In this document: positions 10,045 to 62,249 of the stretch, in pieces
Layout: every line of letters begins with the position of its first letter
Position numbering within the stretch: the stretch's first letter is position 1
DNA from: Convolutriloba macropyga
Lineage: Eukaryota
Assembly (NCBI RefSeq): GCF_964194025.1
Contig: NC_134468.1
Coordinates: 59,272,001-59,336,000 of the forward strand
Direction: 5' to 3'
Length of the DNA stretch: 64,000 nt
Program-made: the position numbers and the translations under genes
Notes under the pieces: model-generated
Databases searched by the model: none
Seen by the model: only the letters and a program-made list of their open reading frames with translations
Told to the model about the DNA's origin: nothing

Positions 10045-10094
10045 GGTAAGTGATACTTCGGATCTGTTCTTCGTTTTGTCCTCATGCGCCCCCC

Positions 10095-23729: not shown

Positions 23730-24077
23730 ATGCACGTGCGTCCGGTTGATCTCTCAAATCGAACGAGCAAAACAAGAACTGAGAAAAATTTACATTTGAA
23801 ATTTGAATCTTTAGCACCCAAGATTGAACCTACCACATTTTTAAATCAGTGGCTGTTATCTAAAAGAAGTCGACAAAGCAGAGTGTTGCTGTGGGGGGCC
23901 GAAGTTCCACCGGTTGGAACAACTCTATCAGTCTCAAGTTGCAGATTCCCCGGTGAGATAATTCCATTTTTTAGTACTGTGGTAGTCTATAAAGAGGAGA
24001 TGTGGTATATTGTTTTCTTTTGAACAGTTATTGGCGCGATCGAAAATGAAGTACAATTTAAGAACAAAAAAGAAGCT

Positions 24078-27000
24078 TTGACAATTGAAAATTCACCTAG
24101 GACAGACATTTGTTCCGAGACTGAGGTAAATCCAGACCCAAGCAGTGGTCTAACTCAACAGATGTCCAACCATACAATTGAAAATAAGTTTCACATTTCA
24201 CCTGGCTCTATTTTATTTATTCCCGACACCGCCGACAAATTATATAATATCCAGGTATTAGAACATCTTTCGGAAGAAACGAAAGTTGGATGCATTGCAT
24301 GGGGCCCTGATTACGACTCATGGATCAACTCAAAATCAATATGGTCCTATTGGTGTTTCAAAAAACATTTAGGTAAATTGAAAAGAATCTCCAAGGAACT
24401 ATCAGACCAAGTCGACGATCTGCTAATGACGATCAGCTTATATGAACTCCGAAAGAATTAGAACAGACGGTAACCTTCCAGAAATAAAAACGTTGCTGCA
24501 CGCTAAAGTCCCCACTATCCGCTATATCCCTATCAAAGTACGGTACAAATTGTCTGAGCTTTTCTCTGACGTAATTACTCAATGCATTGAAGATCCTAAT
24601 ACAGAACTAAACTGGAGAAAACTCTTCAGATTATCTAAATGCGTTTTACGTGCCAGTAACAGAGGAGGGCAAAAACACAGGAGGAACAACGACCAAAGAA
24701 TTCTGGAAAGAAATAATCCCTGGAACAGCGGAGACTTTGGAGGGCTATGGAACGAAGCTTGCTCTTTGAAACAATCAAAACGATCGAACAATACAAACTC
24801 TGAAGAGATTATCAAACGTGCAAAAAATTTGTGTTTCCAGGGTCAATATGGCAGAGCAGCAAAAATTTTGGCTTCTGATGGTTTTGCACCAGTCAACAAG
24901 GCAGCTCTCGATAAATTGAAAAAATTGCATCCCCCTGAAGAAAAGCCTATTGTAGTCCAAAATATTTTATCACAAGCCTATCAAATCAGTGAGGAAAATA
25001 TTTCGGAGCAGCTGAACTCGTTTTCAAGATTTACAGCAGCTGGTCCTTCAAAAAAGTTTCCGAACATCTTTGCAAGCTGTACAGTGTACCGCTTCAGATC
25101 AGTCACAAATTGCTTTGAGAGTTTTGACTAAGCTCGTAAACATAAGCTGCCGTGGGGAACTTCGCGAATTTGTTTCACAAGCTCTTTGTAGTGCATCGTT
25201 AGCAGCTTTGATGAAAAAGAAAGGCGGTATTCAACCTATTGCAGTCGGAGAAGTCTTGAGGCGGTTAATAGCTAAATGTTTAGCTAAGGAAGCAAATTAA
25301 GAAGCAAAAGAACTTTTCCAAATCCTGCAAATGGGTGTCGGAGTGAAGGGAGGAGAGGAAGCCACTATATATTCGACTAAGCTTTCTTAAAATACTCACC
25401 TCGTCCAGTTCCTCGGCTATTTTGCAAATTGACTTTTGCAATGCATTCAATTCGATAAAACGCAGTGAAATGCTGAAAACCATTGCCAGTTCAATGCCTG
25501 GCATTGCCGCTTTTACCAATTCCTGCTTTTCACAACACAGCCAATTATTCTATGACAAATTTGTTAGTAGTTGTGAAAGCGGCATCCAACAAGGCGACCC
25601 ATTGGGCCCTTTGCTTTTCTCTCTGACGCTCTGGCCCATTATAGAGAAAATTCAGTAAATCTTCGCCAGAGCTTCAACATTATTCCTGGTATCTGGATGA
25701 TGGTGTCTTGGTGGGCTCAGAGGACGATCTCATTAGATCTTGGGATCTTCTATTCCAGCTCGGAACTGATCGCGGCCTCCACGTCAGGGTCGATAAGTGC
25801 GAACTGTGGTCCACGGTAGATTTAGATAGACTGGATATAAGAACAAAACGAAATGATATTTCGGGCCTTGAGGTTCTTGGAGCTGCGTTAGAAACCCCAG
25901 AGTTTGTCTGCTTGAAATTTAACGAAAGAATAGGGAAAATAAGGGAATTTTTCGAAAAATTGGACTATCTTGATGACCCTCAGTGCGCCCTAGGTATCAT
26001 ACGCCACTGCATTGGGTCCCACAAAATGGTGTATTCTTTACGTTGTCAAACGCCCACAAGTCCAGTTATTAAATCCCTAAAAGAATTTGATGCCCAACAG
26101 CGCGAAAACTTGAGAACATTCTTAGAACTGTTCTTCCAGAAGAATCCTGGACTCAAGTAACCCTGCCCAAAACCCTTTTAGGGTTGGGTGTTCGCCAATG
26201 TCAAGACCAGTATAAAGCATCATACGTTGGTTCTGTTCTCTCCTCTGAAGATCTTGCTCCGAAAATAACCGGTGGAAGCCCAAAAAACTGCCACGTTTTT
26301 CAGTATCTTTATTCCAGTATAGCACAACTGGACATTTCAAACCTCTCGCAAAAGACGATCCAGCATGCTTTCGATAATGAAAAGTTTCATGGTCTCAAAG
26401 AGAATCTAGCTTGTGAGAGAGAATCCGCCCGACTTCTCTCATTGTCTGTTCGACATGCTGGAGCTTGGTTGTCTGCTCCCCCCATTTCAGCTCTTGGGCT
26501 TCATATGGCACCAACTGAGTTTCGAATTAGTGCAAAGTACAGGTTTGGTGTCCCTGTCTACGACGCCGAAAGGAAGTGCCCGTTTTGTAAAGCAGGAGTT
26601 CTTGACATCTATGGGGATCTTGCCATAGCGTGTCACGGTCGAGGACGCCCAATTGCAAGACATGACCGGATTCAAGATAAAATAGTTTCTGCTTGCTCAT
26701 CTGCGAATCTCTCACCAGTAGTGGAAAAAAAGAACCTAATTCCAGAAAGCCAATCACGCCCCGGAGACATCTTTGTCCCGACTTGGAAAACAAGGAAACC
26801 TGCTGCATTTGATGTAACTGTTACTTCGTCGCTGCAATCCAACTCTCTCACTAATGCGGCTACAAAGGCAGGATACGCGCTTGATGAAGCAATTGAAAGA
26901 AAATATTGCCTCCACGACGAAAACTACGCAAAAATGGGAATCACCTTTGTTCCACTTGCAATTGAAATCCTTGGCGGAATATCGGCAACCTTCAGAAAAA

Positions 27001-27144
27001 ACACTCAGGCGGTTGCCTGTGTTAAGTGACAACCGTTTTTTCCAAGCGCAGGGGTTGTCTGTAGCTTTCTGTAAACTGATGCAATCCTTGTCAGTCACGG
27101 CTATTTGGGGATCAGCGGCAATGTTGCTGGCACGGGCTCCCTAG
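24078..27144 (+). mobile_element. CRE-clade non-LTR retrotransposon (RT plus C-terminal restriction-like endonuclease), frameshifted
   Basis: RT motifs KKKGGIQPIAVGEVLRRL, IDFCNAFNSI, GIQQGDPLGPLLFSL and WYLDDG. HAGAWL, a zinc-finger remnant CPFC..D.YGD.AIAC, RHD, and RLE motif RPGD...AFDVTV...K...FVPLAIE. Confidence 0.9.
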
Positions 27145-32633: not shown

Positions 32634-35600
32634 CTAAAAACGATACGTACATCAAAAATTATTTGAAAATATTAAAGAAAATACATTTGCACTCTCAATC
32701 AGTCTGTACAATCATTTATATCCACAAGTAATTGGATGATTCATTAGAATAGCCTTATTATGAATACGTTACAACAGTAACCTTTTTCTATTTTATCTGA
32801 ACACTATGCTAGGCAGGAACTTAGATTGTGAATAAATTGCTGCCCCTAATAGAAGAGATGAGGATAAAACATACCCGGCATATTGCCGGAAAATAGCCGC
32901 CGTTGATTCCAATAAGCATGATTGGGATTGAAAGAAGAGAAGATATTGAAAAAAAAATTTTTTGTTCAAAAACATTTTTTAAGTCGGATTTATTTTGATG
33001 TCATTTCTTTGTAGTTGAACATACTTCTGTTTCTCTCAGAGAGAGTCTACAGGGGCTACAATCAATACCAATAAGCATAAGAGATGGTAACTAAGACTTA
33101 TAGGACGACGTTCAAATAGCGGGCATCTAAAATTGGGCTTTATGGGTTTATCCCGTTTCTATTTGGACTTCAATTTATTATACTGACTCTGTTCATTTTG
33201 AATTGCTTTGGTGAGCTACTGATGTTCAAATTCACTTTTAGCAGAATGAGACAAGAGAGAACCTAGCCTAGTCCGAAAGATTTCACGCAAAATGTCGAAA
33301 AAGCGGCAAAATGGTAAAGCGAAAAAAAAGTTCGACGAAGTAAAAAAACATAGCAGGACAAGTCCTGACGTACAATTCAAAAAATTTTCATAGACTACAA
33401 AAAATACTCGACCTAGAACGGACTATGAGTGAAATGGCAAAATCATTTCCAAAAAAATCAGATCAAAAAATTTAAAAAAAAACAGAAAATCAGTGTCAAA
33501 ATACGCATGTGAACAAAAAAACCACTAGCGAGAAGTTGAAATTTAATTCAAACAAAAAAACTAGGCCTAGAATGAGCTGTGAATGGATTGGGAAAGTCAT
33601 TTAGAAAAAAGCCGACCCAAAAAATTGAAAAAAAACAGTAAAAATCAGAGTGAAATTGCCGCATGTGAACAAAAAACCACTACCGAGAAACCGAATTTTT
33701 GTTCAAACATCGTTTTCTCACTACTTAAAATTAGCGCGAAAAAATTTCACGCCACAAAACCACTCGCTTTTTCGCTCCATTTCCTGTTTCGGCGTGACCA
33801 AAATCACTACTCCAATTTGACTTCAAAAATCATGAAAATGTGTGAACAGATCTTAAAAAAAAGACAGCGCCCCAAAACAATTCAAATTATTTGAATTGTA
33901 AAAAACATAGCAGGACAAGTCCTGACGTACAGTTCAAAGAATTTTCATTGACTAAACAGAAAAACTATACCTAGAATGGACTATGAGTGAATTGAGAAAA
34001 CCATGTTAGGAAAAAATCAGATAAAAAAATAAGAAAAAACAGAAAATCAATGTCAAAATAACGCATGTGAACCAAAAAAACCTCCAGCGAGAAATGAAGA
34101 ATTAATTCAAACAAAAAACTAGGTCCAGAATGAGCTGTGAATTGATTGGGAAAACTATTTAGGAAACATCCGATCCAAAAAATCGAAAAAAAACAGGAAA
34201 TCAGAGTGAAATTGCCGCATGTGAACAAAAAACCACTACCGAGAAACCGAATTTTTGTTCAAACACCGTTTTCTCACTCTACTTTAAAATTAGAGCGAAA
34301 AAAATTCACGGCGCAAAACCACTAGTTTTTTTGCTCCACTTCCTGTTTCAGCGTGACCAAAATCACTACTCCAATTTGACTTCAAAAATCATGAACATGT
34401 GTGAACAGATCTTAAAAAAAAACATAGCAGGACAAGTCCTGAAGTACAATTCAAAGAACTTTCATTGACTAAACAGAAAACTGGACCTATAACGGACTAT
34501 GAATAGATTGTAAAAACCATTTAGAAAAAAAATCCGATCCAAAAAATCGAAAAAACAGTAAAAATCAAAGTGAAATTGCCGCATGTGAACAAAAAACCAC
34601 TAGCGAAAAAGCGAATTTTTGTTCAAACACCGTTTTCTCACTCTACTTTAAATTTACAGCGAAAAAATTTCACGCCGCAAAACCACTCGTTTTTTCGCTC
34701 CACTTCCTGTTTCAGCGTGACCAAAATCACTACTCCAATTTGACTTCAGAAATCATGAAAATGTGTGAACAGATCTTAAAAAAAACATAGCCGGAAGAAT
34801 TCCGGAAACGACTCGAAGTGGAAATTCACTTAAATGCCATTCAACTACTCATCAGACAAAACGTGCCTCCACTAATTTAGGATTATCTTGAAACAAAACC
34901 ATAAAAGAAAAAAAAGAAAAAAAAATTAAATCCATTAAAATACGATCAAAAATCAGATAAAAATTTGTCATCAATTGAGACCCCGAAATAACTATCTCTG
35001 TCAAAATTACATCACCAACACAACTAGTAATTACTAAAACCACATATGAGAAGTTTTAAAAATACTTGATGCCAAATCATGAAAAAATAAGCTCTTACAA
35101 ACAACTTTGACTGAAAAACTGGAAAAAGTTAATAAATTTTTTAATATTACAAAAACACATAAATCCAAAGAAAATTTCTTTTCAGCCAATAGGGTATCCA
35201 GATGATCGCAAAACAATAGGCAAGTCATAATAGGCAAAGAAATTTATCTAGAGACAAAGAAAAACGAAAAACTGCAAAAAAATTAAGAAAAATAGTTCAA
35301 ATTTTCGCTATTTTTCGTCATATTTCTCAATAAAAAATCGCTTCATATCCACAAAACTGCAATTATTTGTTAACTAAAAATTGCTCAATTAATATGGGAG
35401 TTTCAATGCCCGTTTGAGAGAGTAAAACAAAACAACAGCCAAAAAATCGCAAAAATTAGCCCAAAAATCAGCAAAATACATGAAAAACCTCCGATTTAGC
35501 ATCAAATTCATATAAATATCAAGAAACCTTCAAACCACTACCAACACCAGCCTAAAATGAAAAGAAAATCATAATCAAACCTGTTAACCAAAAAAATTGG

Positions 35601-38600: not shown

Positions 38601-41600
38601 TTCCTTTTCAAAACACAAATTGCCGTCTTTATGGCCAAATGTTTAATATCATATGAAGCAGGCACCTTTAATTATTGTAAGCAAACTTCTTTTTTAGTGG
38701 GTTCATATTATTTGCAACCACCCAAAAGCACGTGCAATATTTTTATATAATGATTTATATTATGTAATGGCTTGTGTTGTAACTGGGGGTGCATAACGCA
38801 CTGGGGGTAAAAACGGAAAAGATCCGAAATTAGAAGTTGAACAGCCTCACGTGAACAGCCTGACGCTCATTGAAAAATTATCGAAACGAGGGAACAGGTC
38901 TTGGAAGACAGCACCCCAATCAAATTCTTTGAATTGTAACAAGACAAAAATTTTAACACCTACGTAGCAACACATCAGAACAAAAAGAAAAGACGCCACT
39001 ACAAAACCATCCTTTACATGAAGTCAAAACCCTTCAACACAAGGAAACTGGCAAAGATCTGTCAACTAATAGAAACTGTCAATCGTAAAAGAACAGAAAA
39101 AAAATAAAAACATAACCAAAAAACGTCCGACGAATTGCTCTCAAACGAGGACTGGGGGTGGGTTGAATAGGAAGGGAGGAGTGTAGAGGAGAGCGTTGCA
39201 ATTTGGGGACTGAGGGGTCAAAGCGAAAATTGGTCAGGAGAAAAAATCGCATTAAAAAACGACCACATGACTAATATAATTGCTACAAACGTCGTTTGGG
39301 AGCAATTAATTAGGAAGCTCGTGACTGAATACATCAAAGAAACATGGCAACATCAACTCAATTTGCTCCAGTTCAAACTACTTAAAACAAAAACGTTTCG
39401 CCTTTATATGTCAATTTGTTTGCAATATGTATTTTTTATGAACCATTGAATTTATCGTTAACAACTTTTTGAATACGCACAGAATGTTAAAAAGGCCAAA
39501 TTTTGTTCTAAACCCTTTCGGCTTGATGAGATATCAAGGTGCCGAGAAAGCTAATAACACATGGCTTTGAGATCGGCCAGAACTGGAACCGTACAACTAC
39601 TCGATTGCCATACTAGATAGACGCTGCGTTTTCACTGACCAACCACTCAGATCAATTGCTCATTTAGGCAAGAATGCCACACAGTCCAATCACGCCCCAA
39701 AATTCCTGTTTAAACACGGGTCAACCACTATTAAAACATAGGACTGTAAAGTCCTGAATCAAAATTCAAAAAAAATTGACAAACCGAACACTCACTCAAC
39801 CCTTGACTTGCCATCGAATAAAATCTTAAATCATTAGCAACTACCAAAAACTCGAAAAATGATTATACAAGTTGAGTGGTCCCAAAAATAAAAACCTTTG
39901 AACACCATTTTCTCGCACCACTTTGAATTTACTTCGTAACTTGTCTTGATCAGAACAAACACAATTTTTTCAAGAAACCATCAAAATGATTGAAAAATCT
40001 ACAAAAAAAAACAGCATTTGAAAACAATACAATATAGGTGAACTATAAAAACATGGGGAAAGTCCCGAAGACTCTCATTGAAAAAATAGACATTGACACA
40101 TCTATGGATGCCCCTTTGAAATCCATTAGACAACCTGTCGTCCGTGAACAAGCACTCTTGACAATGTTTTCTCACTTCATAACATAGCCGGAATAGCTGC
40201 GAAAGAATAGACCTGCGTGCCATATAATAGAGATAGAAACAGATATAGATCTAAATTGAAAAAAAAAATCGACGCCGCTCAAAAAACTAGGTAAAAAATC
40301 ATTCAGCGATAAATTAATAAAGCTTGTTAAAATTCATTCCGCAGAGGCCTCCTATTAAGGACCTTTACTGCACATATGAGTTCCTTTGACCTTAAACAAA
40401 TTCAAACTACACTTAAGTTTAGTGCAGAAGTCATTTTATTGAGTGAGGTAAGTCACGTATGATCAAAATCTAATCACGCAAATAACCTAAAAAACTTTTG
40501 CTAAAACGAGTGAGAAATGACGTCACGCGTGCAAATGCCGTTAGTGAGAGGAAGAAGTCATTCAGAAATTTGACTTTTTCAGCTTTGCTGTGTGAACAAA
40601 TGTAAAACGAAAAAAGAGCGTCAGACGACGAAACAAAAAAACATAGCAGGACAAGACCTGACGTACAATTCAAAGAATTTAAATTGACGAAACAGAAAAC
40701 TAGACCTCAAACGGACTATGAATGGATTGGAAAAACCATTTAGAAAAAAATCCGATCCAAAAAATCGAAAAAACAGTAAACATCAAAGTGAAATTGCCGC
40801 ATGTGAACAAAAAACCACTAGCGAGAAAGCGAATTTTTGCGAATTTTTGTTCAAACACCGTATTCTCACTCTAGTTTAAAATTAGAGCGAAAATTTCGGC
40901 GTGACCAAAATCACTACTCCAATTTGACTTCAAAAATCATGAAAATGTGCGAACAGATCTTAAAAAAAAACAGCGCCCCAATACAATTCAAATTCTTTGA
41001 ATTGTAAAAAACCAAGAGCACCGCAATATAGCTTCGCTCAGCTTACAGCTTCGCAGCTATAAAAACAAAAAACAAATTCACTCCTCCAAACTAAAAATGA
41101 AAACGTGGAAAACTGTCGATTTCTATATAAGCTTTCAAATGGAACACCTAAAGATACATTCATGTCCCATAAGAGAGCCAACAAGAACAGTCATTATTGA
41201 GAGACATCGAAAAAGAACAGTAGTACCAGAAAAGTATCGGAAAGTGTTCTACTGAGCTCCGCAATTTCATGAAATTCATTTAACGTGGCCAATTCAGCCT
41301 CAAAGTGAGAGGACAAAAACCAAGTTTTAACATATTAACCTAGTGCACCGGCTTATCGGTTTATCCTATTTCATATAATTTCGCCTTTTGACCTTGAACG
41401 CATTCACGTAAACTGTTGAATGAATTCTATATTCCGCTCAGTTGAAACACAGTGAGGAAGTCAGAGGTCAAAGGTATAAATGACGACTCATGTAAAACAA
41501 AGAAGAGCAGAAAGAAATTAGGAATTAAAATAGCCTTAAAATAGCCGTTTGAGTAGCTGATAGCGGATATTAAAAAGTTATTACTATTTTTTTGAAACAA

Positions 41601-50600: not shown

Positions 50601-53214
50601 AAGACAACGTACTCTAGAGGGCAGCCAGAAGACTCAAGGCACCACTAAACTACAGTGCGAAGCATCCCCTCGTTTTCAATAGCAGGAGCAAAATTACAAG
50701 ACTGCTGATTAAAAACACACCATGACTGTGGTCATCAGTGCGTAGAAAAGGTGAAAGCTCACCTGCAACAAACTTTCCTGATGATTGGATTGAGAAAAGT
50801 GCTGAGAAGTCTGCGGAAATACTGTTTCATTTGCAGATGATGGAGGGCAGACAACGTAGACCGAAGATGGCTGATCTGCCTGAACTCATATTTCCAGTTG
50901 TAAACAAGCAGTACCCTTCCGTCAATACACGAATGGACATGTTTGGATCTTTCTACACTGAGGACCAGAGGGAGGGCACTCAGGTGCACTACGTCTGCTT
51001 GTCCACACGCCTGATTACCGGAGCAGTGCACATAGAAGTATGCCTGACCTCTCAACCGCTTGTCTTCTCATAGCCATCCGCAGGTTTGTATCACGACTTT
51101 GTTACCCGGGCCTCATTTTGAGTAACAATTAGCAAAGACTTCATTGGAGCCAACCAAGCAAGGAAGTTGAAATTCCACAGAAATTACCAGCCAGACAATG
51201 AGTACACAAGCCTACAATTGGCTCATCAGAACATTCAGTGGACTTTCATTCCATCATTGGCACCACCCTACGGAGAAGTCTGGGAGAGGCTGATCAGACC
51301 GCAAAGAGGAGTCCACTAATAGTGCTGGGCAGTCGGAAAATAACACTCAAGTTTTCCAGACAGTTGTGGCAGAGGCCAGGGCAATTTTGAACAACAGGCC
51401 ATTAACTCATGTGGGCTGCAGCATCTCAGATGAGGGATCACTTATACCTAATCATTTTCTACTTCGCAGACCTCACATGATTTTTAAACCTCTTGTGGAC
51501 AACAACAAGCGGTTCTTCACTAAGGAAATTAAGTTGACGCAGACACTACTTGATCACTACTAGAGCAGGCTGCTAAAAGAATATGCTCCTGAGCTCAACA
51601 AGAGACGGAAGTGGCACAATCAAATGATGAGCAGGACGAAAGTGGAATTGTGTGGGTGCTCAAGGACTTCACACCCTCGAGGAATCTGGCCTCTTGGGAA
51701 GATTGTAAAAGCACACAGAGGTTCAAATGTAACAGCAAGGAGCTTCGACATCCAGACGGCTACAGGAATAGTCCAAAGACCAGCAAAAACGCTAAGCAGT
51801 GTATTCCCACAAGTGTCAAGTGCTCCTGAGGGTCACTGAAACAAGTTCATTGAAAGACCCTGAACTTGTTTCAGAGTCACTGAAACAAGTTCACTGAAAC
51901 AAGTTCATTGAAAGTTCACTGAAACAAGTTCTTTTATACTTTCTCTTCTCCACAGACACACACATCTTCCTCCCACCACATACATTTTCGTCCTCCCAAA
52001 CCCTTTCATTTCCTGGTTTCCATTTCCCCAACCTATATTCATTGATGCGCTTTATATTAGTTGATTTTATTGAAGACCTCAGAAGTGGTTAACATTCACT
52101 TCCAATATTATTTATTTATAGTAAAGGATTTCCCGTTTTTGACCATAACTTGTGTGCCAATGGCGCGTAATGTAATGTGGATCTTTTCTGTTTGTGCTCC
52201 CCCAGTAGGTTATGCTCCCCCAGTTACAGAGCACTTGCCATTACAGTAAATCTTTGTAAAAATATGGCACATGCGCCTGGGGGGGGGGGGGTTCAATTAA
52301 TATGCGCCCACAAAGCTGGGGGAGGAGGAACGGAAAAGATTCGGATTTTTCTTACCAAATTTCCAAAAATAGCAGAACGCGATAGCAGGGCCATTGGGGG
52401 CTTGTCTGCGAGAACATACTTAGCTTAGTAAAAAGAGGGAAGTGGAAATTTCAAAGACTTTTGTTTTTATCTTCCAAAATTATTAGAAACTCAATTTACA
52501 ATTTCTGCAGGTATCTGCAAAGTCTGCAGGTGTCCTGTCCGTTTTAATGAACTTTTGATTTTCTTAAAATCAGGGAAACTATTCAAACGCGATATTTTAA
52601 TGACTGATAAGCTCGTTACGGTGATACTATTAATTCTAGCCCCATATTTTTCTACTCTTTTAGGTGCAAAAAAACGGACAACCTCCTTTTTAATCCTCAG
52701 TTTAAACCACGCCTACCTTCTCAATTGTTTCGATGACAGACTTGAATGCGTTGATCAGAGTGTTCTTCTGTTGAGAAACGCTGATTGCAATCATCTCATA
52801 TCTAGTCTGAATCCTCCGGCATAATAACAAACTGTTTTGCACCAATTCGGGCACCAACTTGTCACTGATCCCTTTTTCCTCATCTTGTGAACTTGTGTAA
52901 TTGCGAGCGGTTGTTAAAAACTGGTGCAAAAACTTTGTCAGATCTGCTGCTAAACTCCAACTTCCGACGACTTTTGAGTAATCGCAGTTTAAACATGTTA
53001 GGCAGGCAGGGATCAATTCGCTTTCCCATATTTTCTGAATTATAAATGATACATGGGTACTGCTCTTGTGCTTGTTGAACAAATCAGCTAACTCGGAAAG
53101 AATGGGGGGAATTTCAGTCTCTGCTTTAGCATCAGCTGCGTCTGAAGTTATAGTAAATATCTTACGAGAAAGGTGATCGTGAATTTGGTTCTCTATTGAT
53201 ATTTGCGCAGCCAT
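32220..53214 (-). CDS. IQCB1: IQ calmodulin-binding motif-containing protein 1 (nephrocystin-5), 7 exons, 1839 nt / 612 aa
   Basis: Exons 52717-53214, 41749-41940, 38371-38491, 37484-37781, 36574-36780, 36049-36157 and 32220-32633, all GT-AG with matching phases (0,0,1,2,2,0). Colinear with vertebrate NPHP5 as I recall it: DYSKVVGSW, LLLCRRIQT, IYALLDEMVYKL, IQ motifs IQRMYRGFRAR and IQTQWRGYHTK, SEARRAEL, APSL, AKNAHLNTL...PWYKKL. Confidence 0.92.
32868..36003 (-). mobile_element. Composite DINE-1/Helentron-like family B element with an internal tandem array, in IQCB1 intron 6
   Basis: Same termini as 36792-37334. Three ~0.4-0.55 kb tandem units start AAAAACATAGCAGGACAAGTCCTGA (~33345, ~33901, ~34418). 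The terminal motif is duplicated at 35905-36003. Confidence 0.75.
36049..36157 (-). CDS. IQCB1: IQCB1 exon 6
   Basis: ttttaag|WSRRCLAK...GISEARRAELQQ|gtaaag. Not in the supplied ORF track. Confidence 0.85.
36574..36780 (-). CDS. IQCB1: IQCB1 exon 5 (IQ motif)
   Basis: HRNEREAREK...AALKIQTQWRGYHTKK...AIITLQR. Confidence 0.9.
36792..37334 (-). mobile_element. DINE-1/Helentron-like family B element in IQCB1 intron 4
   Basis: On the minus strand: 5' AATAGCCGC...CGGCTATT, 3' sub-TIR GCGGCTATT, hairpin CCGGCA-ATC-TGCCGG and TATGTT. Confidence 0.8.
37484..37781 (-). CDS. IQCB1: IQCB1 exon 4 (IQ motif and coiled coil)
   Basis: GIRFIITRWTGKGFGQE...AASSIQRMYRGFRARR...QMQINR. Confidence 0.9.
38371..38491 (-). 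CDS. IQCB1: IQCB1 exon 3
   Basis: tttacag|VYKLSEFES...FFTRYK G|gtagac. Confidence 0.85.
40400..41062 (-). mobile_element. Family B element fragment in IQCB1 intron 2
   Basis: Homologous to ~59030-59690, including the CATAGCAGGACAAG module. Confidence 0.7.
41749..41940 (-). CDS. IQCB1: IQCB1 exon 2
   Basis: tttag|IVERSSVMARSVLES...IYALLDEM|gtttgc. Confidence 0.85.
43720..52178 (+). mobile_element. Degenerate BEL/Pao LTR retrotransposon in IQCB1 intron 1, antisense to the gene
   Basis: Direct repeats at ~43720-43948 and ~51940-52178. Gag WHQWFSFFKTTIH...QKMTYL, BEL Cys-His CPNCL...C...C.GFH..TLH, RT FYIDD, RNase H FTDAS / WTDS / NPADHGTRG, integrase EARAILNNRPL, DUF5641 PRGIWPLGKI. Confidence 0.92.
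44231..46877 (+). repeat. ~1.3-1.4 kb tandem duplication inside the BEL element
   Basis: Both units begin TGTCCCTAGAAGTGAGAC (44231, 45600) and end GAGTATCATGTTCGAGGACAGA (45586, 46878). Each contains a CA microsatellite. Confidence 0.92.
52179..52342. mobile_element. GGATCT-family MITE abutting the BEL 3' repeat
   Basis: GGATCTTTTCTGTT / AACGGAAAAGATTC. No clear TSD. Confidence 0.6.
52717..53214 (-). CDS. IQCB1: IQCB1 exon 1
   Basis: MAAQISIENQ...IETIEK, donor AAG|GTAGGC. Confidence 0.9.
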
Positions 53215-54738
53215 ATTACTAAATGCTGCAGCAATAGAAAAATTACAATTGCTCTAAGCGTACGTTTCAGATTTATACAACGCACCTATGTTTAAGCATT
53301 GATGGCCAATATATAAGCGTTTCATTCTATGCGTTTTGATTTTCATGTAATAAATAAGAGGCTAAAATTTTGCACGAGCTCCTTTGCAGAAAAGCCTTTT
53401 CTAATGTTTAATCTTCATTGAAATTGAATAGTCTTTGGACGAAAAGCGGAATTCTTTCTTTTCCCCCAATCCCCTTCTTCCAAGACTTTTTTATGAGTAA
53501 TGTTTTTGTTTTCATAAGCCTGCTCAAACTAATGACTTTTTGCACTAATCCACTAATCATGGTTTGCATCGCCTATAACAGGCCAGACTAGCCATTATTT
53601 AATCAGTTAAAAATTTATAAATCAGTTAATTAATATAAAACCTTATAAAGGTGTAAACAATGTCAATGATAGCTCGAAAAACATCAAAATTGCCCCAAGC
53701 TTGATTTTGAAGTTGGATAAGTTAATTTTTGGAAAATTGCAGTTTTAATCATTAATTATTTTCTAACTGATTTTGGAAAATTCGAAATTTCAAAAAGGAA
53801 CAAGATGTCTATGCGAGGAACAGGGCTCACTGAACAACAAAGTATTGTCACTAAAAGAACGGTCTCAAATGCGCGAATTAAGAGGACAACTAAAATTAGT
53901 CTTCTGATAAAGGCACTTTCCTTTGGTCTGGCACTGATCTAATGCAATTCTTCAGAATTACAAATATTATTAAAACTGCTGGGGGAAAAGCAACCAGCCA
54001 TGTCCAACGAATGTGCAATCAGCCATGTGCAACAAAGCAACGGGAACTTCATTCGTAGAAACACTCGCTAGAATACGTTAGCTTCTACTGCAACAAATAC
54101 TCTTTCGACAAAAGCATTGTTCCAAATATAATGGAAAAGTTTTAATTCGTTTTAGGTATTAAAAAGTGTAAACAAAAATAAAGCTCCTTTATTACAAAAA
54201 TGGCTATATTAGGAAGCACCATATTTCAATAGAGATGAATAAGTGTAAAGAGATATGATTCTCAGCTATACAGAGATAGAACTAAAGTTAAATTTTCTTA
54301 CCAGCACTAAAAAAAGTAGCGAAGGCAACTATCTTGTCAAATTATTGTACTATGCAACTAGATGATACGCCATCAGTTCCGATAACTCATGGCGAGCAAT
54401 AAAGGTACATTATTCTGTATGTCTTGCTGATTGACATGGAACTCAGTTCATGTATAGATTACGTCACTCCGATGAATTAAGAGAGAAAATCAGGCATTAA
54501 TCAGGAATCGCTGTTTATAAGACAGATTCGCAAGATATAGGACAGAATTTCAAAATGCAAGAAGTTTTAAAATGTGGCACTGTATAAAGGAAAATCGATA
54601 TTAATCATGTTTAAAGAAATACTATCAGATCTATACGCTTGCAACATCTTTCATTTTACAACCCAAATGTACGTCAGTAATATTTCCTCAAATCTGGTAA
54701 ATTACATTCTACTACAGGTACTTCGAAACTATTCAAAT

Positions 54739-55876
54739 CTAATCACTTTCCGCAAACTGTTCCAGAATATCTTCCAAACATTTCACGTGGTTTTCATTCA
54801 ACTCAAACAGAGGTGAATATCCGGCCACGCCTTTAAAGATCTTATCCCAAGCCAACTTGAGAATTTCACTTTCGACTATTTCCTCACCAAAGAAATGCAG
54901 CCAAAATGCGAGAATAGCTTTTCTAGTCGAATCACTATACACGCCCAATTCCTGCTCAACAATGTCATACCCATATTTGGTCAACAACTCCTGCGCTTTT
55001 GTTCCTTCTTCTGTAAGCTTTTTTCCGGTTTCTGAAAACGGAATAACAATTTTCGGGTCCTTTACTAGACACAAATTGGCCTTCCTTGGAAATATGCCGA
55101 AATCTTGTGTGATGTTTAAACCGGTGAACATCTCATCCTTCGACGCGTTCGCTAGTACACCCCATGGGAAGTAAGGATTCGGATCAATTTTTCGGCCAGG
55201 AGACCAATCGCTATGACCAATCATTTTTTGAGCTTCAATTGTTGGGAACTCATTCATAAGTTGTTCACATAACAGGACGTTGGCACGCATTTGTGCTTTC
55301 GAGTATGGTTCATTTCCGTTGTTTATATTTTCGATTCCAATGGACCAACTATTCATGTTGTCCTTCATGCCCGAATAATCGCCGAATAGAAGTTCTGAGC
55401 CATTAGAGAAATTGCCGACACCAGCATGGTATGCTCTAAAATCCCTATGAACAAATTCATAAACAGTGCCGTCTTTGTCAATCACAAAATGGGCAGAAAC
55501 TTTTCCCTTGGTAAAAATATCGACTGTTCGTGAAAAATTTGCAACTGTATTATGCTGCACAATATACACTGGATATGCTTCTTGGTAAAATCTCTCTCCG
55601 TCGACCAGTTTAAACCTGTAGTTGAAATTATTACATTTTCCCGGTTGAGGGTTGACGATCTCACCGCTTTCTCCCGGTTCCAGTGGATATTTTTGCATGT
55701 CTCGCAAATACGTGGTATTGTACTCCATAATAACAGGATGGTTTTGCTCCTCAAACTTCGTACTCTCTGCAATAGTATTTTCTCTCAGGGTAACTATATA
55801 TTTGGTCTCACTACCTTGAATCGACACGAATATAACGACGAGAAATAGTAAAAGAAATTTTGAAGTTCTTCTGCTG
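54739..55876 (-). CDS. AmiD/AmpD-type N-acetylmuramoyl-L-alanine amidase (Amidase_2 plus C-terminal peptidoglycan-binding-like domain), main exon
   Basis: IVQHNT (Zn His), VSAHFVIDKDG, RAYHAGV, NSWSIGIE (catalytic Glu), IGHSD (Zn His), PGRKIDP (Zn Asp), FPW, and C-terminal LLTKYGYD...AILAFWLHF. The frame is open upstream of the GTG through the hydrophobic stretch KFLLLFLVVIFVSIQG to an acceptor at 55877. Confidence 0.93.
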
Positions 55877-55923
55877 CTAACACAGATGAAGACAGGTAAT
55901 TAAAATTATTCAAAACATGGCTT

Positions 55924-58606
55924 TTATTGTTCCGACCCTCTTGAGGGGGGAGGAACTATATACTCAAATGGGTTTTTTTTTGTTCCGTGAATTTCCGCCG
56001 ATCGATATATTCATCGTAGAGAGTTGAGACTGGTATCATTAGAAATTTTGTCCGGCGTAGAATATGGAATAAAAAAGATTTTTTTTAATTTTCGTTTTCT
56101 AAAGGGAGTTATCGAGGTTTAAACTTCTGAGAAAAGTAGAATTCACGTTGTTTTTATTCACATTTTCCGGAATTTTTGCCTAAATTTTCGTCAGTTTTGC
56201 TAAAATTTGCTATAATTTTTAAGAATAGTGTCGTTTATTTTATTTTTGAAGACGAACAAGCATTGTTGATTGTTTTAATTTAATTTTTTGGTCAAAAAAT
56301 CTGGATAAACATTTCAAAATTTAGACTTTTTCATCAAAAACAGCATGAAATAAGCTACTTTAGTCCACTTTGATTAAATTTGCCGACAGTACAACCCCCA
56401 ACAACACTCATACAATCTTTGTAGACTCAGAGGGGGGGCATTTCTACTTCAGAGTCCGCTGAGAGTGCTCTGTAGTTAAAACTTTGCCTTTTTTGCTAAC
56501 TTTACTCGTTGATTATCAAAAATGCAGAATTTATTTTGAGTTTTCAACTAACAAATTATCTATATCTACATAATTCGAAAAACCAATTGTTCCTAACGGA
56601 CAAAAAGCTTTAGCAAGGATAGTTTTGGGCCATTCTTGGACTGTTACAATCCAAAAAAAATCGGGTTGTAATCAGTCGGTCTTTTTTTTAAAAAAGACCT
56701 TTTTTTAATAATAAAGAACGGAACATATCAAATCAAAGCTCAGGAGTGATAGGTCCAACCAATTCGCTTACTAAGCAGCTCGAAGCTAATGCATTTAGTT
56801 TTTTACTTGAAAGTTTATGGTCGTTTCTTTTTTTAAAATAATTACTTTTCAATAAATAATGGCTTAATTAACTTTTCCTCTATTTTTTTCTTAATTTGTT
56901 CAACTTCCAGCTTAGTTTCAGCAAAGAAAGAATGCTTCTTCTTTCTACTGATTTAACATTTATTCTAGGTTGCAGTTTTAAGCCTGAAGTTATTGTTTTC
57001 TGGCTTTGATTGTACAAGATTTCAGATTTTTGTTTGTTTTGATATTTGCCAGTTTTTCACGTTTTCTAATTTTGTCACATTATCACATTATCACAGTTCT
57101 CATGTCACGTTATTAGCGTTCAGAATAAGGCACATATTGAAATCGTGAAAGATATACATCATCGTTTTAACGGCCTCGACGCCTCTTTCTTGAAGAAATC
57201 AATTGAATTTTAAAAATTTTGTCTAACTGTCATTTATACTTTATCGTTTCGGTCGTATGAAATTTCCTGTATAGTGATAGCTTTCATTGGCTTTTCATGG
57301 AAAAATAGAAGAACCGATATTCTGATATTAGTAGATAGCTGATGGCTTTCATGACTTTGAAAACAATCGTTCTCCAAAATTAAAAAAAAACTTTTCAATT
57401 TCGCAATTTTGTTCTTTTTATGTTTCTTTTTGTTACCTAATCTCGCTGGTTAATTACAGGTCAAATATGGTATTATGGGTGTCAAGAGAATAAAAGGGAT
57501 TGGAGTCCCAAAATCTTCTTTTAAAGAATTTGTTATGACGTTACTGGTTTTAAAGAATTTGTTATGACCTTACTGGCTTCGACACCGGTTTTTCACAAAA
57601 AAAAGTAAATTAATTTGATTTTTGTCATATTTGACGTTCTTTTTGTAGATGCAAGAAATATTCTGGATAATTGCAGGTCTCGAGGGCTTCTTTTTCATGA
57701 CTAAACGACGCTATTTAAATACTTCTTTTTGTAATTAATGCCTTTCATGACATTGAATGTAATTTTGTTTCGCAAAAAAAATTAAAAGTATTACTTTAGC
57801 ACTTCGCTTTTTTGTCTACTTGTTACTTAGTCTTACTAATGAATGGCCACGTAATACATTATAGCTGTTTGAAGAAGGCGCAATCGAATATATTTTGAGG
57901 GCCAAAATATGGCTTGACGATTTTGACAGCGTTTTCTGGCAAGTTTCAATTGAAATTTTGTTTGTTTTTTTTTGTTGTTCTTTTTAGCCGCTTTAAAAAA
58001 TGAATAAGGACAGGTCCTAATGCCCTTCTATAGAAACATTGGTAATCGTAAATTTGTAGTAATATTAATTGATTCATAATGGTATTTATTACTTTGTAGT
58101 TAACTGTTTTAAAAAAGTAAGTTAATTTTTTTACTTTACTGTTTTTGTTCTTTTTTGTATAATTGCTACCAAACCTTTTTATGGACTGGTCGCATATGTT
58201 TTCTGGTGACTTATAAGTTATTTTTGTTTAGTTTTAGGTTTATCTGACGGTATGTTGACTTTTTTATTAAATTTAGTTTTTAAGAGGGACATAAATTTTT
58301 TGATGTAATTAATGTTTGTTGTTGTTGTTGTTTGATTTTGCTGTTCGTCTTGACTCGCTTTCTTAATATTGACATATTACAGCAATCTAATGCATCAATT
58401 TTTACTCAACTGAGTTATTTGCTTTGGAGGATATCTCATCGTTCATACAGAATTTTTTGAAAAAGACTTGGACTTTTTTGGGATTCGCAAAAAATATTTT
58501 TTGGGTTTTTCTATCTGTTCCTCATTTGGTAGACAATTATGCCAAAATTGTGGATGGGCGGGGTCGGAACCTTATGTGCCATCGCACATTATCGAGCCGC
58601 CTTGTT
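55924..58606 (+). mobile_element. DINE-1/Helentron-like element, family A, copy 2
   Basis: TTATT-GTTCCGACCC (55929-55938) ... GGGTCGGAAC (58561-58570), stem-loop ATGTGC-CATC-GCACAT, terminal CTTGTT. Confidence 0.82.
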
Positions 58607-58786
58607 CTGCTTCAGATTCTTCTTTACTAATTTATCGGTTTCTTCTGTTATAACTGATAGTAAGAGCAGAAGAGTACTTAATTCGTTTTCTTCAACACTT
58701 TGTTGATCACGATACAACATTGCGTACATCAATGAGTTAACTGTACTCATAACTGTCTTAATTAACTGCCTAACGAGCTTAAACCA

Positions 58787-59690
58787 AACATAGCTGGCAG
58801 ATTGCCAGAAAATAGCCGCAAAAGATTCGTAGATCGGCAGTCTAAAAAAACAGTAAAAAAGACAGACCAAAAAAATTCGTCTTTTCATTGAAGGCTGATC
58901 TGTTCTATTTTGATTAAAAATCTGTATAAGTTATTGCTGCCTCTATTAGCTGATCTCAAATAACCTTCATTTACAGTGACACACACCCATTTGACCTTAT
59001 CTCTTTGAATTAAAGTAAACAAAAGTCAATTTCAAATTGAGGAAGTCATTTTTGAGAGTGAGGTAAGTCAAGTGTGACCAAAAATTTAATCACGCGCATG
59101 AACAAAAAAACTCGCTCCACTAAGAGCGAAAAATGACGTCACACATGCAATTCAGTTGAAATTGCATGAACGAATGAACAAAAAGTGGCTGTGACGTCAT
59201 ATGGTCGTAACAAAAATCATGACGACGAAATAAAAAAACATAGCAGGACAAGTCCTGACGTACAATTCAAAGAATTTTCATTGACTAAAAAAACTAGACC
59301 TAAAACGGACTATGAATGGATTGGAATAACCATTTAGAAAAAAATCCTATCCAAAAAATCGAAAAAAGAGTAAAAATCAAAGTGAAATTGCCGCATGTGA
59401 ACAAAAAACCACTAGCGAGAAAGCGAATTTTTGCTCAAACACCATTTTCTCACTCTACTTTAAATTTAGAGCAAAAAAATTTCACGCCGCAAAACCACTC
59501 GCTTTTTCGCTCCATTTCCTGTTTCGGCGTGACCAAAATCACCACTCCAATTTGACTTCAAAAATCATGAAAATGTGTGAACAGATCTTAAAAAAAAAGA
59601 CAGCGCCCCAATACAATTCAAATTCTTTGAATTGTAAAAAACCAAGCGAAGGCCAATAATAGCCCCAGCTATCGCTGTGCGGCTATTAAA
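58787..59690 (-). mobile_element. DINE-1/Helentron-like family B element, both termini present
   Basis: AACATAGCTGGCAGATTGCCAGAAAATAGCCGC ... AATAGCCCCAGCTATCGCTGTGCGGCTATT. Confidence 0.8.
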
Positions 59691-59902
59691 AAAGACCCCA
59701 ACTTTACTCGGTCAATTTCACGACTCTTGCTATTAGACAACTTGATTAATCTGTAAGGTTAAATTACACACTTAAATGCTTTTTGCCATGTTTACCGAAG
59801 ACCAGCTTTCTTTACAATGGGTACCGTGAGAAAATCATTTTACATTTACTCGTTGATTATTGATAACAGACTCGTGCAAGTCTGCGCATGCAGTGAACTT
59901 AC

Positions 59903-59946
59903 CAAGTGAAAGTCCGCGATGGATATGGGTTCAATGAGCGCCCCAT
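59903..59946 (-). CDS. Candidate first coding exon of the amidase (MGRSLNPYPSRTFT)
   Basis: ATG at 59946 and a strong donor TG|GTAAGT. Phase 2 matches the acceptor at 55877. An acceptor-like TTCTTTTTTCAG precedes it at 59961. Confidence 0.45.
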
Positions 59947-62249
59947 TATGAAACAGAATTCTGAAAAAAGAACTTTGTGTAAATTCAACCAGTAAGCTCG
60001 CATTGTTCTATGCGTGCCGCAGAAAAGCCCACATTGGCATTGAAAAGCCTATATTCAATACATGTAAGTACCAAATCTGAAATGATGCCGCCGAAAAGTT
60101 TGCCTTGATTTCGCTTCAGTTCATATCGTCTTCCTTTAAAACTTTTAACGGTAAAAAATTAAAGGACATTAACAATTTCACGTTCCTTTTGAGCGACACC
60201 CAACTTACAGTGAACTGTGTTTGATAATGCGTGCTTCTAACAGGAATTTCATTGTGGTCAAAAATAATAAATCACCAGAGAAATAATGAACACTGAAAAA
60301 ACTGGAACAGCCCAATTGTGACAGAGCTAAAACTATTAAAAGAATTGGACGCCGAACTCAAAACTCCTCAATAAATCTTAGAAGAGAAATTATCAATGTT
60401 GTTAATCTTAGATTGACTTCTACTTCAAGTTGAAAGCCACTGACACTCTGCTTTCCGCAAGCAGTACAATAACACAAAAAAACTTGAAATTTGGTCTTGA
60501 AATTTAAAAAACATTAAAAACATGTTTTGCGTTCTGTATCCTGAAAATCATCAAAACTAATTTTCAAACTTCCCCTGCATTATGTCAACCTTTCTCATCA
60601 GAGCATATTTAAAGCCCGGAAAATCCGCTTCAAGGATTCAATTGCTTTCCAATTATTTGTCTTGTTTTGATTTTGGCTAAAGCCACCAGCCTGGCAACAA
60701 ACTTGACCGTTCGCCTGCCACTTGTTTGCCGCGCAAAAAGATAAAAAGAATAATAATTAGAACGAAGTAAACAAAAAACCTATAGAGATGAGAATAACTT
60801 CACGGGAAGAACGGAAAGAAAGATTCAACAAAAAATGACAACAAAAAAAATTGCGCAATTACAATTCAACCAATTCAATAAACCGCAGATATGGATCTCA
60901 GGCAGATTTGATTAAAGGAGATGTTTTCTTCTAAATAAAGCAGTTGAACGTTCGTGTTGAATTAATAATAAAAATATGAGTTATGAAACTAACAAAATAA
61001 GAGCTCTAGGAAAAACACAAAAAACCCAAAGTAAATTAACTCACGACAAAGCAACTGGAGTTAGAACAGTAATGATAGAAAAGAATAGCAAATTCAAAGA
61101 GGCTTTGGGAAGGAATTGTGTTGAACTTTTTCAAAGACTAAAATTTAACACAACAGAAAACAATCTCTACAACCATAGACCATACTGATTCATTTATGCA
61201 ATTTAGAGAAAAATTACTGATGTCAAAAGTTCTCGCAGAAAAACTTGAGGAACTCCAGAAATCAAAGTTTTTTTGAACAAACAGATTTCGCAAATGTCGG
61301 AGCCGTGAGCTTTGGGTAAAAACAGAAGAGCAGTTACATTCGAAGATAGCGATAAAGATTTTCAAATATTGTTTTTGAAAAAAAAAGGGAAATACGGAAG
61401 TCTCGAACATCAAACTCACTTTTTAAAAACATACGCAAAAGTTCATTTTGAGAACAAATAATGTCGAAATTACAACAAATCGTGCAGACGAAACAATGAC
61501 GTCTCAATTAATTCCAACAAAGACAAAGGAGATTCAAAAATGCTATGGAGGAACAGCAAAGAAACAGGGGACAACAGCTGCGGTCAAATTCAGAATATAA
61601 ATAAATTAAGTCAATATTCGCCCAGTTAGTTAAAAGCTTCGACTATTTGGCGATTGATATGTCGATTGGCATCATGACAAAATACACTAGACTCGCCATT
61701 TTTATACTACGGCAGATCATCAAATGGAAATACGAACAGGCGCATAACTAAAACATTTTCTTAAAATCACATCAACGTCAATAAAATATCACAATCTCAA
61801 CAAATAATTTGTTCAAGCGCAACCAGGAATCAAAAACATTTTTCGATCGACTGCTTCTTAATAACAGTCGCAAACAAATCAGTAACAGTGAAAAAAAGAA
61901 CACGACAAAAAGTTATTCCGAAAACCTGTTTTCTCTATCACTTCTAAAAAAGGATTTCATTACCTGTGCCTACAAATTTTTCTAACATCTGAGCTGCTCT
62001 AGCGCGAATAAAAAGATTCTGCAAATTTAACTTCAAAATATCTTTCAAAATCAAAATGTATCCGCAGATCTTTAAACAGGAGGAGGTCCAAATAAGACCC
62101 AATTTCTATGAGAAGTAAAACGAGAAGCTTTATAAATGCATACGTAGATGCTCTGCGCTGCTGAAAACTTTTGTTCACTGGTTGAACAAAACTAATTAGC
62201 AAGAAACAACAAAATCAAGGCTGAAGAATAATTGGTCAAACTCAAATAA

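Follow-up and report, generated by a model that had tools for sequence, protein, structure and literature searches.

Aphids, mealybugs, ticks and ladybirds are known to have acquired genes for bacterial cell-wall enzymes. The best-known precedent, AmiD of the aphid Acyrthosiphon pisum (ACYPI006531), has a His/His/Asp zinc site, a C-terminal tail and two exons separated by one long intron; it is related to proteins of Orientia and Amoebophilus and is expressed most strongly in bacteriocytes (PMC2829048). We analyzed a 64,000-nucleotide stretch of the genome of the acoel Convolutriloba macropyga (GCF_964194025.1, NC_134468.1:59,272,001-59,336,000; hereafter "the window", to which all coordinates refer) that contains a gene for a bacterial-type peptidoglycan amidase. 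Like the aphid gene, it encodes a bacterial Amidase_2 protein from an intracellular-symbiont lineage and has one long intron. By contrast, aphid AmiD is canonical, with 41% identity to Escherichia coli AmiD (PMC2829048), whereas for the acoel protein this figure is 28%; the latter falls in another subfamily, and its host is a marine acoel with no known bacteriome. Judged from the published identity of the aphid protein, the acoel event is likely to be independent of the amiD transfers in aphids and mealybugs. The acoel case adds to a known kind of transfer into animals. In the literature we searched, no such transfer is described for acoels or any other xenacoelomorph: the C. macropyga genome note, an acoel immunity paper and a photosymbiosis preprint do not mention the amidase gene, neither amidases, PGRPs nor peptidoglycan are mentioned in the body of the immunity paper or in 20 of its supplementary files, and the Xenoturbella genome paper gives unnamed transfer candidates only. 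With the gene structure, host integration, bacterial ancestry, conservation of catalytic residues and sequence constraint documented here, we assign a probability of about 80% to the account as a whole, namely that this is a single-copy nuclear gene of the acoel, derived from the peptidoglycan amidase of an intracellular bacterium and since eukaryotized, whose product acts as a zinc amidase on the bacterial cell wall.

An earlier note, made from the letters of the window alone, had claimed an intact amidase open reading frame (ORF), and this ORF is present on the minus strand. In the ORF listing it spans 54739..55827 and, counted from a GTG, has 362 codons; the frame stays open to ~55900 with no in-frame ATG. 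It is part of exon 2, which has 377 open codons on the minus strand (54739-55873/55876), and the upper coordinate given in the note, 55876, is the first base of this exon in RefSeq isoform X1. The amidase is a 100% match to the RefSeq proteins XP_075247913.1/XP_075247905.1, "AmiD-like" of C. macropyga, encoded on an 89 Mb chromosome. RefSeq thus already carries the gene, under a name that reflects resemblance only and not AmiD orthology. A six-frame search with the N-terminus of the RefSeq protein (P0001) located exon 1, which encodes the 15 N-terminal residues absent from the ORF. The boundary between exon 1 and the intron reads ...ACT TG/GTAAGT, and the intron ends in a NAGNAG acceptor at 55874-55878 (coordinates of all features are in Table 1). 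Use of the AG at 55878-55877 gives isoform X1 and use of the AG at 55875-55874 gives isoform X2; the two annotated isoforms, P0122 (X1; 393 residues, with one extra Ser) and P0001 (X2; 392 residues), fit these tandem acceptors exactly. We infer splicing and expression of the gene from the RefSeq model and the canonical splice sites.

The intron is largely built of repeats, with 89% of its length matching repeats elsewhere in the window. Most of it (55924-58606) is one copy of a ~2.7 kb repeat whose second copy lies in the opposite orientation at 14653-17335 and is 91% identical. The ORF and its immediate flanks, by contrast, are unique in the window, such that the earlier description of the gene as lying among repeats found elsewhere in the window holds for the intron and not for the ORF or the sequence next to it. 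The G+C content of the ORF (40.2%) matches that of host exons (40.7-44%), against 33% for the flanks. Adjacent repeat copies of ~200-370 bp that are 82-94% identical to a segment of the amidase intron are present at 33333-34785, and also at 59223-59642 and 40427-41083; the run at 33333-34785 lies within the span of the neighboring gene, which encodes an IQ motif.

Four public sequencing runs, from two samples, contain 99% of the words of the ORF. Mapped over 54300-60250, these runs behave as genomic DNA, with flat depth and with contigs that cross the exon-intron boundary. Depth over the ORF was 45, 66, 5.9 and 4.1 in the four runs and equaled that of the unique flanks on either side; word depth in the intron repeats was 1e5-1e6 in the DNA runs. 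One Logan contig joins the ORF, across the acceptor, to intron sequence, and others extend from the ORF to the flank on the 3' side. Just 3' of the stop, at 54550-54780, is a heterozygous, two-allele bubble in which each allele has about half the depth. ENA assemblies contain the same ORF on two more contigs, one of 604 kb and one of 250 kb; the 604 kb contig is 98.3% identical to the window over 6.9 kb that include the first exon of the downstream gene. This neighbor is a multi-exon gene on the minus strand, with its first coding ORF at 52702-53214 and an IQ motif in a later exon (Pfam IQ, 2.2e-7). The amidase had been placed 1.5 kb upstream of a spliced IQCB1 gene; a multi-exon gene on the same strand does lie 1.5 kb downstream of it, but the name IQCB1 could not be confirmed beyond the IQ motif. 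The amidase gene is physically integrated in an animal nuclear chromosome, as a single copy. Coverage and continuity, which the earlier note had proposed as a check for a chimeric join, give one answer: depth, contigs and further assemblies all speak for true integration.

The encoded protein matches Pfam Amidase_2 (PF01510) with an E-value of 2.9e-27, scoring 96 bits where the cut-off is 26 and covering positions 5-131 of the 131-position profile, and its C-terminal part has a sub-threshold match to PG_binding_1 (E 0.012; 16.2 bits against a cut-off of 23). All of the motifs from which His/His/Asp zinc ligands, a catalytic Glu and an AmiD-like C-terminal module had been proposed are present, namely, in P0001 numbering, QHNT (His122), YHAGVG, SIGIE (Glu196), GHSDW (His235), RKIDP (Asp245), LLTKYGYD and AILAFWLHF. 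A search of PDB sequences gave Pseudomonas aeruginosa AmpDh2 as the best match (1e-18), with GHSDWSPGRKIDP of the acoel protein aligned to the ligand-bearing GHSDIAPGRKVDP of AmpDh2; E. coli AmiD, AmpD and AmpDh3 matched at ~1e-11. The phmmer match to E. coli AmiD (E 7.5e-12) covers the catalytic domain only. An AlphaFold2 model made with the family alignment has a predicted local distance difference test score (pLDDT) of 88. Averaged in blocks of 10 residues, it exceeds 90 almost everywhere from residue 61 on, whereas residues 1-54, in the acoel-specific N-terminal region, are below 50.

The predicted fold is closest to those of E. coli AmiD and of AmpDh2 and AmpDh3 of P. aeruginosa, which are periplasmic two-domain enzymes (2bh7/3d2y, 4bj4, 4bxd). 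For AmiD (2bh7), Foldseek E-values were 2e-14 to 5e-14, and VIA aligned model residues 114-390 with chain residues 27-260 at a Z of 23.2 and a root-mean-square deviation (rmsd) of 2.3 Å over 214 residues. For AmpDh2 and AmpDh3, Foldseek E-values were 3e-13 to 6e-12 and Z was ~23; across these enzymes rmsd was 2.3-3.7 Å over 214-222 residues. The VIA alignments to 2bh7, 4bj4 and 4bxj, at Z ~23, extend to model residues 388-391 and to the C-termini of the chains and so cover both domains. Z fell to 19.8 for AmpD, which has a single domain, to 15-17 for phage endolysins and to ~13.8 (13-14) for PGRPs. The acoel protein has the His/His/Asp triad, the Glu general base and a Lys in common with AmiD, AmpDh2 and AmpDh3. 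It differs from them in its sequence (27-33% identity), in an extra YLRDM...CNNFNYR segment, in a longer loop between HAG and SIGIE, in a C-terminal module of ~130 rather than ~80 residues, and in having no lipobox. Modeling and comparison together predict a two-domain amidase of the AmiD/AmpDh2/AmpDh3 type with His/His/Asp ligands and a catalytic Glu.

Closer assignments were rejected. Orthology to AmpD is contradicted by a score of 91.2 bits, under the cut-off of 143, against the AmpD equivalog model NF008758 of NCBIfam, by the additional C-terminal domain and by the signal-like N-terminus. Orthology to E. coli AmiD is contradicted by a structure-based identity of 28%, by the restriction of the phmmer match to the catalytic domain and by placement in a separate clade (support 100/99). 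The description of the architecture as that of proteobacterial AmiD was accordingly not upheld: the protein is no canonical AmiD ortholog, and its nearest bacterial clade is Amoebophilaceae/Cardinium, in the Bacteroidota. Animal PGRPs such as Drosophila PGRP-LB/SC, and T7 lysozyme, have the fold of the Amidase_2 superfamily and cut the same bond, and animal PGRPs are secreted and act on peptidoglycan. Their third zinc ligand is a Cys, as it is in T7 lysozyme, whereas the acoel protein has Asp245 at this position; PGRPs lack the C-terminal module, their Z to the acoel model is below those of AmpD and phage endolysins, and no PGRP was among the named sequence matches to the amidase. Membership of the PGRPs was rejected on these grounds, and the contrast between a Z of 23 to AmiD and AmpDh2/3 and one of ~13.8 to PGRPs bears out the view that the enzyme is of bacterial type.

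The closest relatives of the acoel protein are copies in the ENA eukaryotic assembly ERZ25071366 (62-70% identity). They are followed by the metagenome clusters P0002 and P0003 (52-54%; 54% for P0002 on contig L001), by metagenome-assembled genomes of Amoebophilaceae and by Cardinium (48-52%; one Cardinium copy is annotated as plasmid-borne), by Rickettsia tillamookensis (47%; other Rickettsiaceae 33-38%), by the nematode Aphelenchoides avenae (46%) and by the stink bugs Nezara viridula and Halyomorpha halys (39-42%). The bacterial homologs match acoel residues 64-390 over their full length, with 46-52% identity for the Amoebophilaceae/Cardinium and R. tillamookensis copies, and share all domains and motifs. 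We scanned 185,579 GTDB species representatives (one genome per species) with two motif patterns, by which divergent members could be missed, and found the full-length architecture (residues ~65-390) only in Amoebophilaceae/Cardinium and in Rickettsiaceae (Rickettsia, Tisiphia and Megaera); all other bacteria in the scan had the catalytic domain or the N-terminal part only, without the C-terminal module. That the holders are obligately intracellular and that one copy is annotated on a plasmid suggests that the amidase is a gene of the symbiont mobilome. The family members P0005, P0024, P0031 and P0036 sit in dense bacterial neighborhoods (MreB, MutL, BamA/OmpH/SurA, MraZ, UvrA and two-component systems). 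A viral vector was considered and rejected, as IMG/VR contained distant phage amidases only, with 26-27% identity in the catalytic domain alone.

Several members of the family are found in eukaryotes. The P0002 cluster has 40 members, and the contigs examined come from marine metagenome assemblies, several of them from Tara Oceans. On the longest (L001:1-5979; Tara Oceans PRJEB4352), the amidase ORF is intronless and has no signal peptide, and the neighboring GMC-oxidoreductase gene is cut by three short canonical GT-AG introns, for which reason we take the organism to be a eukaryote. The A. avenae copy is a host gene, because it spans 2.6 kb for 333 residues, with introns, and stands beside a UDP-glucuronosyltransferase gene. 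In a clade around P0010 (P0009-P0020, with hydrophobic N-termini), the compact contig L013:170-6983 (Logan ERR14064713; 30% GC) has a eukaryote-like context, with genes for an ASF1 histone chaperone and a 911-residue protein with two RNase III domains, and this copy is probably from a protist and a further eukaryotic acquisition; an Atlas search assigned the ASF1 protein to Eukaryota, with no finer rank.

Assembly ERZ25071366 has four copies. Contig L009 (6016-7365) contains one with both halves, and L010 (6070-12126) contains three tandem N-terminal halves, ~2.8 kb apart and 93-95% identical to each other. All four stop at the same codon, after NNGNEPY, and the next ~40 nucleotides are homologous between the two contigs. 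On L009, coding resumes after 366 nucleotides, and excision as ...CAAG/GG...AAAAG/CT... restores the exact spacing of the family; no canonical GT-AG intron fits the interruption shared by L009 and L010. Two readings of the interruption fit, a non-canonical intron and an old insertion with subsequent duplication. In the three L010 copies, the conserved His of YHAG is replaced. These loci share no repeats with the window, which suggests that the assembly is from another species, although they may be paralogs within Convolutriloba.

We inferred a maximum-likelihood tree (LG+C20+F+G4 PMSF; 58 rows, 344 columns) in which support values are rough, as the bootstrap had not quite settled (correlation of 0.989, where 0.99 is wanted). 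The acoel copy paired with the ERZ25071366 copy (100/99), and P0002, from the eukaryotic Tara contig, and P0003 joined this pair next (95/85). The resulting four-copy group was sister to Amoebophilaceae/Cardinium (100/97), with all nine rows together at 100/98. The family as a whole was split from generic proteins with Amidase_2 and PG_binding_1 (100/99) and, unlike AmiD and AmpDh2/3, forms its own clade limited to intracellular symbionts and eukaryotes; in a tree with named Rickettsiaceae added, Rickettsia, Tisiphia and Megaera were its basal branches. The nematode and stink-bug copies, which have the same full-length architecture at 39-46% identity to the acoel protein, fell with P0144 in a different clade (97/99). 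Forcing this clade together with the acoel group cost 44 log-likelihood units and was rejected by the approximately unbiased (AU) test (p = 0.005), a result that is somewhat weakened by the constrained group having been named after the tree was seen. Because the two clades are separate and their joining is rejected, the acoel acquisition and that of the nematode and stink bugs are therefore independent.

These placements solidly support horizontal transfer from a bacterium into an animal lineage, as the earlier note had proposed: the acoel copy nests among bacterial sequences, apart from other animal copies, with the caveat that its two nearest neighbors in the tree are on eukaryotic or unassigned contigs. 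The tree did not place it within a broad, vertically inherited eukaryotic clade, and PGRPs are distant from it. The alien index was +50 for named matches, but it would go negative were the Tara eukaryote a metazoan, and we do not lean on it. As donor, a Cardinium-like symbiont of the Bacteroidota is more probable than a proteobacterium. Our reading is that the family is bacterial, with at least two acquisitions by eukaryotes and a third should the P0010 clade prove to be eukaryotic. Because the closest relatives of the acoel copy also lie on eukaryotic contigs, the transfer may be an old one with descendants in other eukaryotes and not peculiar to C. macropyga.

Alignments of 41 (A1) and 14 (A2) family members separate ancestral from acoel-specific parts of the protein. 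The acoel protein and its bacterial relatives have in common the segment YLRDM...GKCNNFNYR, in which R72, C95, N96, F98 and R101 are invariant or nearly so in A1 and A2, the long loop between YHAG and SIGIE, and the C-terminal module of ~130 residues. What is specific to the acoel is limited to residues 1-63, made up of the peptide encoded by exon 1, then a basic stretch, the hydrophobic run FLLLFLVVIFVSI and a linker, all modeled at pLDDT below 50. The ~85-residue N-terminal extension and the insertion after HAGVG had been noticed before and taken as signs of remodeling. Both are present, with ~85 residues preceding the Pfam domain and a HAGVG-SIGIE spacer ~11 residues longer than that of AmpDh2; however, the insertion and ~50 residues of the extension (YLRDM...CNNFNYR) are family traits conserved in bacteria and are not animal remodeling, which is confined to residues 1-63.

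In the alignment, Met64 corresponds to the start of the Tara protein and is close to where the mature bacterial proteins begin, and it is plausibly the original start of the transferred ORF. The Amoebophilaceae/Cardinium and Rickettsiaceae genes are intronless, whereas the acoel copy has exon 1, the intron and 63 new N-terminal residues. Read by eye, the proteins of Cardinium and Amoebophilaceae have signal peptides ending in Cys, Rickettsia has no signal, and the stink-bug and P0009/P0020 copies have hydrophobic N-termini. The acoel N-terminus has no lipobox; it has a eukaryotic-type hydrophobic segment (Kyte-Doolittle mean of 3.4 over the 13 residues of FLLLFLVVIFVSI) followed by QG/SE. From these features we infer that the amidase enters the secretory pathway.

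The coding sequence shows signs of constraint. When the 604 kb contig is compared with the window, 4 differences are seen in 1089 nucleotides of coding sequence (0.37%) and 79 in 5801 nucleotides of flank (1.36%; Fisher p = 0.0035). Relative to the most complete ERZ25071366 copy, the nonsynonymous divergence (dN) is 0.20-0.28 and the synonymous divergence (dS) is saturated, and for this reason no dN/dS ratio is given. Both results fit long-term purifying selection on the amidase, and neither is strong alone. All catalytic residues and 46 family-invariant positions are kept in the acoel copy.

Table 1. Coordinates in the window of the amidase gene and of the parts of its product.
Feature	Position	Strand	Details
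Exon 1, coding part	59903..59946	-	ATG at 59946-59944, 14 codons (MGRSLNPYPSRTFT) and 2 nt of codon 15 (44 nt)
Spliceosomal intron, 4,029 nt	55874..59902	-	GT-AG; donor GTAAGT at 59902, NAGNAG acceptor (tag/cag)
Exon 2, coding part (isoform X2)	54739..55873	-	Third base of codon 15 to residue 392, then TAG stop at 54741-54739
Hydrophobic core FLLLFLVVIFVSI, residues 21-33	55819..55857	-	Predicted signal peptide or anchor; RRTSK before, QG/SE after
Family-specific N-terminal segment, residues 64-113 (MEYNTTYLRDM...GKCNNFNYR)	55579..55728	-	From A1 and A2; pLDDT >90
Amidase_2 catalytic domain, residues 116-248	55174..55572	-	Pfam and PDB sequence matches
Zinc ligands	His122 55554-55552, His235 55215-55213, Asp245 55185-55183	-	Invariant in the 14-member alignment A2
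Catalytic Glu196	55332-55330	-	Invariant in A2; Lys243 likewise present and invariant
C-terminal helical module, residues 260-392	54742..55140	-	AmiD/AmpDh2/3-like, related to PG_binding_1

Elsewhere in the window, a long CA/TG-rich low-complexity tract at 10050-12066, with ORFs that read THTHTH or CVCVCV, includes runs of N at 10487-10816, 11172-11320 and 11580-11789. At 7742-8164 on the minus strand, an exon-like ORF matches Pfam Trypsin (1.4e-7), contains GDSGGP and codes for the C-terminal portion of a trypsin-like serine protease. On the plus strand, a string of long ORFs at 19938-27029, without Pfam matches and with a CCHC-like knuckle in one of them, resembles a degraded retroelement.

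The history that we propose begins with a peptidoglycan amidase of an obligate intracellular bacterium, whose nearest extant clade would be Amoebophilaceae/Cardinium within a wider family that includes Rickettsiaceae. After integration, the bacterial ORF, starting near Met64, would have gained ~63 upstream codons, and with them a new 5' exon with an ATG, a spliceosomal intron and a hydrophobic, signal-like segment; host transposons would later have swollen the intron to 4 kb. The mature protein would be a zinc-dependent N-acetylmuramoyl-L-alanine amidase in which His122, His235 and Asp245 hold the zinc and Glu196 is the general base, and it would cut the amide that links the L-Ala of the stem peptide to N-acetylmuramic acid (MurNAc) or anhydro-MurNAc. 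This expected chemistry, in which zinc activates hydrolysis of the bond, follows what is established for AmiD and AmpD. The C-terminal helical domain may dock on glycan or peptide. The enzyme would work outside the cytosol, in the digestive syncytium or phagosomes or in mucus or the epidermis, where it may kill or digest bacteria or remove immunostimulatory muropeptides. Given expression, we consider it reasonably probable that the protein is a secreted, possibly membrane-anchored, active amidase that acts on the bacterial wall at the surface of the animal or inside it, in phagosomes or the digestive syncytium.

Four other explanations have to be weighed against this account, two of them concerning where the gene came from. 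A symbiont or contaminant contig wrongly joined to acoel DNA might have been suspected, as the specimen is a holobiont with algae and bacteria and the named relatives outside C. macropyga are mostly bacterial. The coding sequence is, however, split by a GT-AG intron full of host repeats; in two samples it has the depth of the unique flanking host sequence, and a heterozygous site adjoins it; Logan contigs join the ORF to both neighboring host sequences; the locus recurs in two more assemblies with the same downstream gene; and no other bacterial-type ORF lies near the amidase. Contamination or a chimeric join is effectively excluded. It is also conceivable that the gene is an old, vertically inherited eukaryotic one that Cardinium and Rickettsiaceae took from their hosts, with no transfer into the acoel. 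Amoebophilaceae and Rickettsiaceae hold eukaryote-like genes, and several members of the family are on eukaryotic contigs (L001, with introns in the neighboring gene; L013, with ASF1 and RNase III; A. avenae, with introns; the stink bugs). Yet the copies in eukaryotes are scattered and do not form one clade (AU p = 0.005), bacteria make up the basal branches and every outgroup, the substrate is the bacterial cell wall, the bacterial members have signal peptides ending in Cys and sit among BamA, SurA, MraZ and MreB, and the nearest solved folds are bacterial AmiD/AmpDh proteins rather than animal PGRPs. We regard vertical inheritance as very improbable.

The other two explanations concern what the gene does. 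An integrated but inert gene, unexpressed or a decaying relic, would be in keeping with the finding that a search restricted to RNA-Seq libraries listed no run, and with the truncation or interruption of most ERZ25071366 copies, three of which lack the conserved His of YHAG. It is difficult to reconcile with 377 open codons in exon 2 with catalytic and 46 invariant positions intact, with a divergence of the coding sequence that is a quarter of that of the flanks, with a dN far under a saturated dS, or with two RefSeq isoforms that differ only at the NAGNAG acceptor, such models being in our view normally based on RNA-seq; we think it unlikely. The protein might instead be a scavenger of muropeptides that tunes responses, like catalytic PGRP-LB/SC, or a manager of bacterial associates, as proposed for AmiD of aphids and mealybugs. 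AmiD/AmpDh-type amidases, such as E. coli AmiD and P. aeruginosa AmpDh2/3, cut stem peptides from muropeptides and sacculi and do not lyse cells outright, as a scavenger role would have it. Aphid AmiD is upregulated in bacteriocytes (PMC2829048), and the reported lack of conserved immune signaling pathways in acoels (PMC12849515) points the same way. On the other hand, the literature searched documents no endosymbiotic bacterium in C. macropyga. Control of the Tetraselmis symbionts by the amidase is unlikely, because to our knowledge Tetraselmis has no peptidoglycan wall, which also counts against a managing role. We hold the scavenger or manager role to be possible but the less favored one, and prefer the secreted amidase acting on bacterial walls.

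Some observations weigh against the account that we favor. Read by eye, the sequence downstream of the amidase stop has no canonical AATAAA, and a search for the ORF limited to RNA-Seq libraries listed none, the four runs that hold it all being genomic DNA. The 4 differences in the coding sequence, from a small comparison, are 2 synonymous changes and 2 conservative replacements. The region before the hydrophobic core is unusually long for a signal peptide (20 residues, judged by hydropathy only), such that a signal anchor is possible, and translation from Met64 could give a cytosolic protein. At the node uniting the eukaryotic four-copy clade with Amoebophilaceae, the direction of transfer is not polarized by the tree itself.

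A broader version of this history, which we put forward only tentatively and think doubtful, makes the acoel gene one branch of an old eukaryotic clade, together with the multi-copy genome of ERZ25071366 and the marine-metagenome eukaryote, that was founded by a gene from an Amoebophilaceae-like endosymbiont and is kept under purifying selection. Eukaryotes would have captured this intracellular-symbiont family at least two to three times, repeatedly adding secretion signals, and in acoels the enzyme would be a principal effector against peptidoglycan. The recurrence of a symbiont-restricted family in unrelated eukaryotes points to intracellular symbionts as repeated donors of one enzyme. Acoels are reported to be without conserved immune signaling pathways (PMC12849515), and in light of this reported absence, a secreted amidase that came from bacteria offers a concrete candidate for an effector with which acoels handle bacteria.

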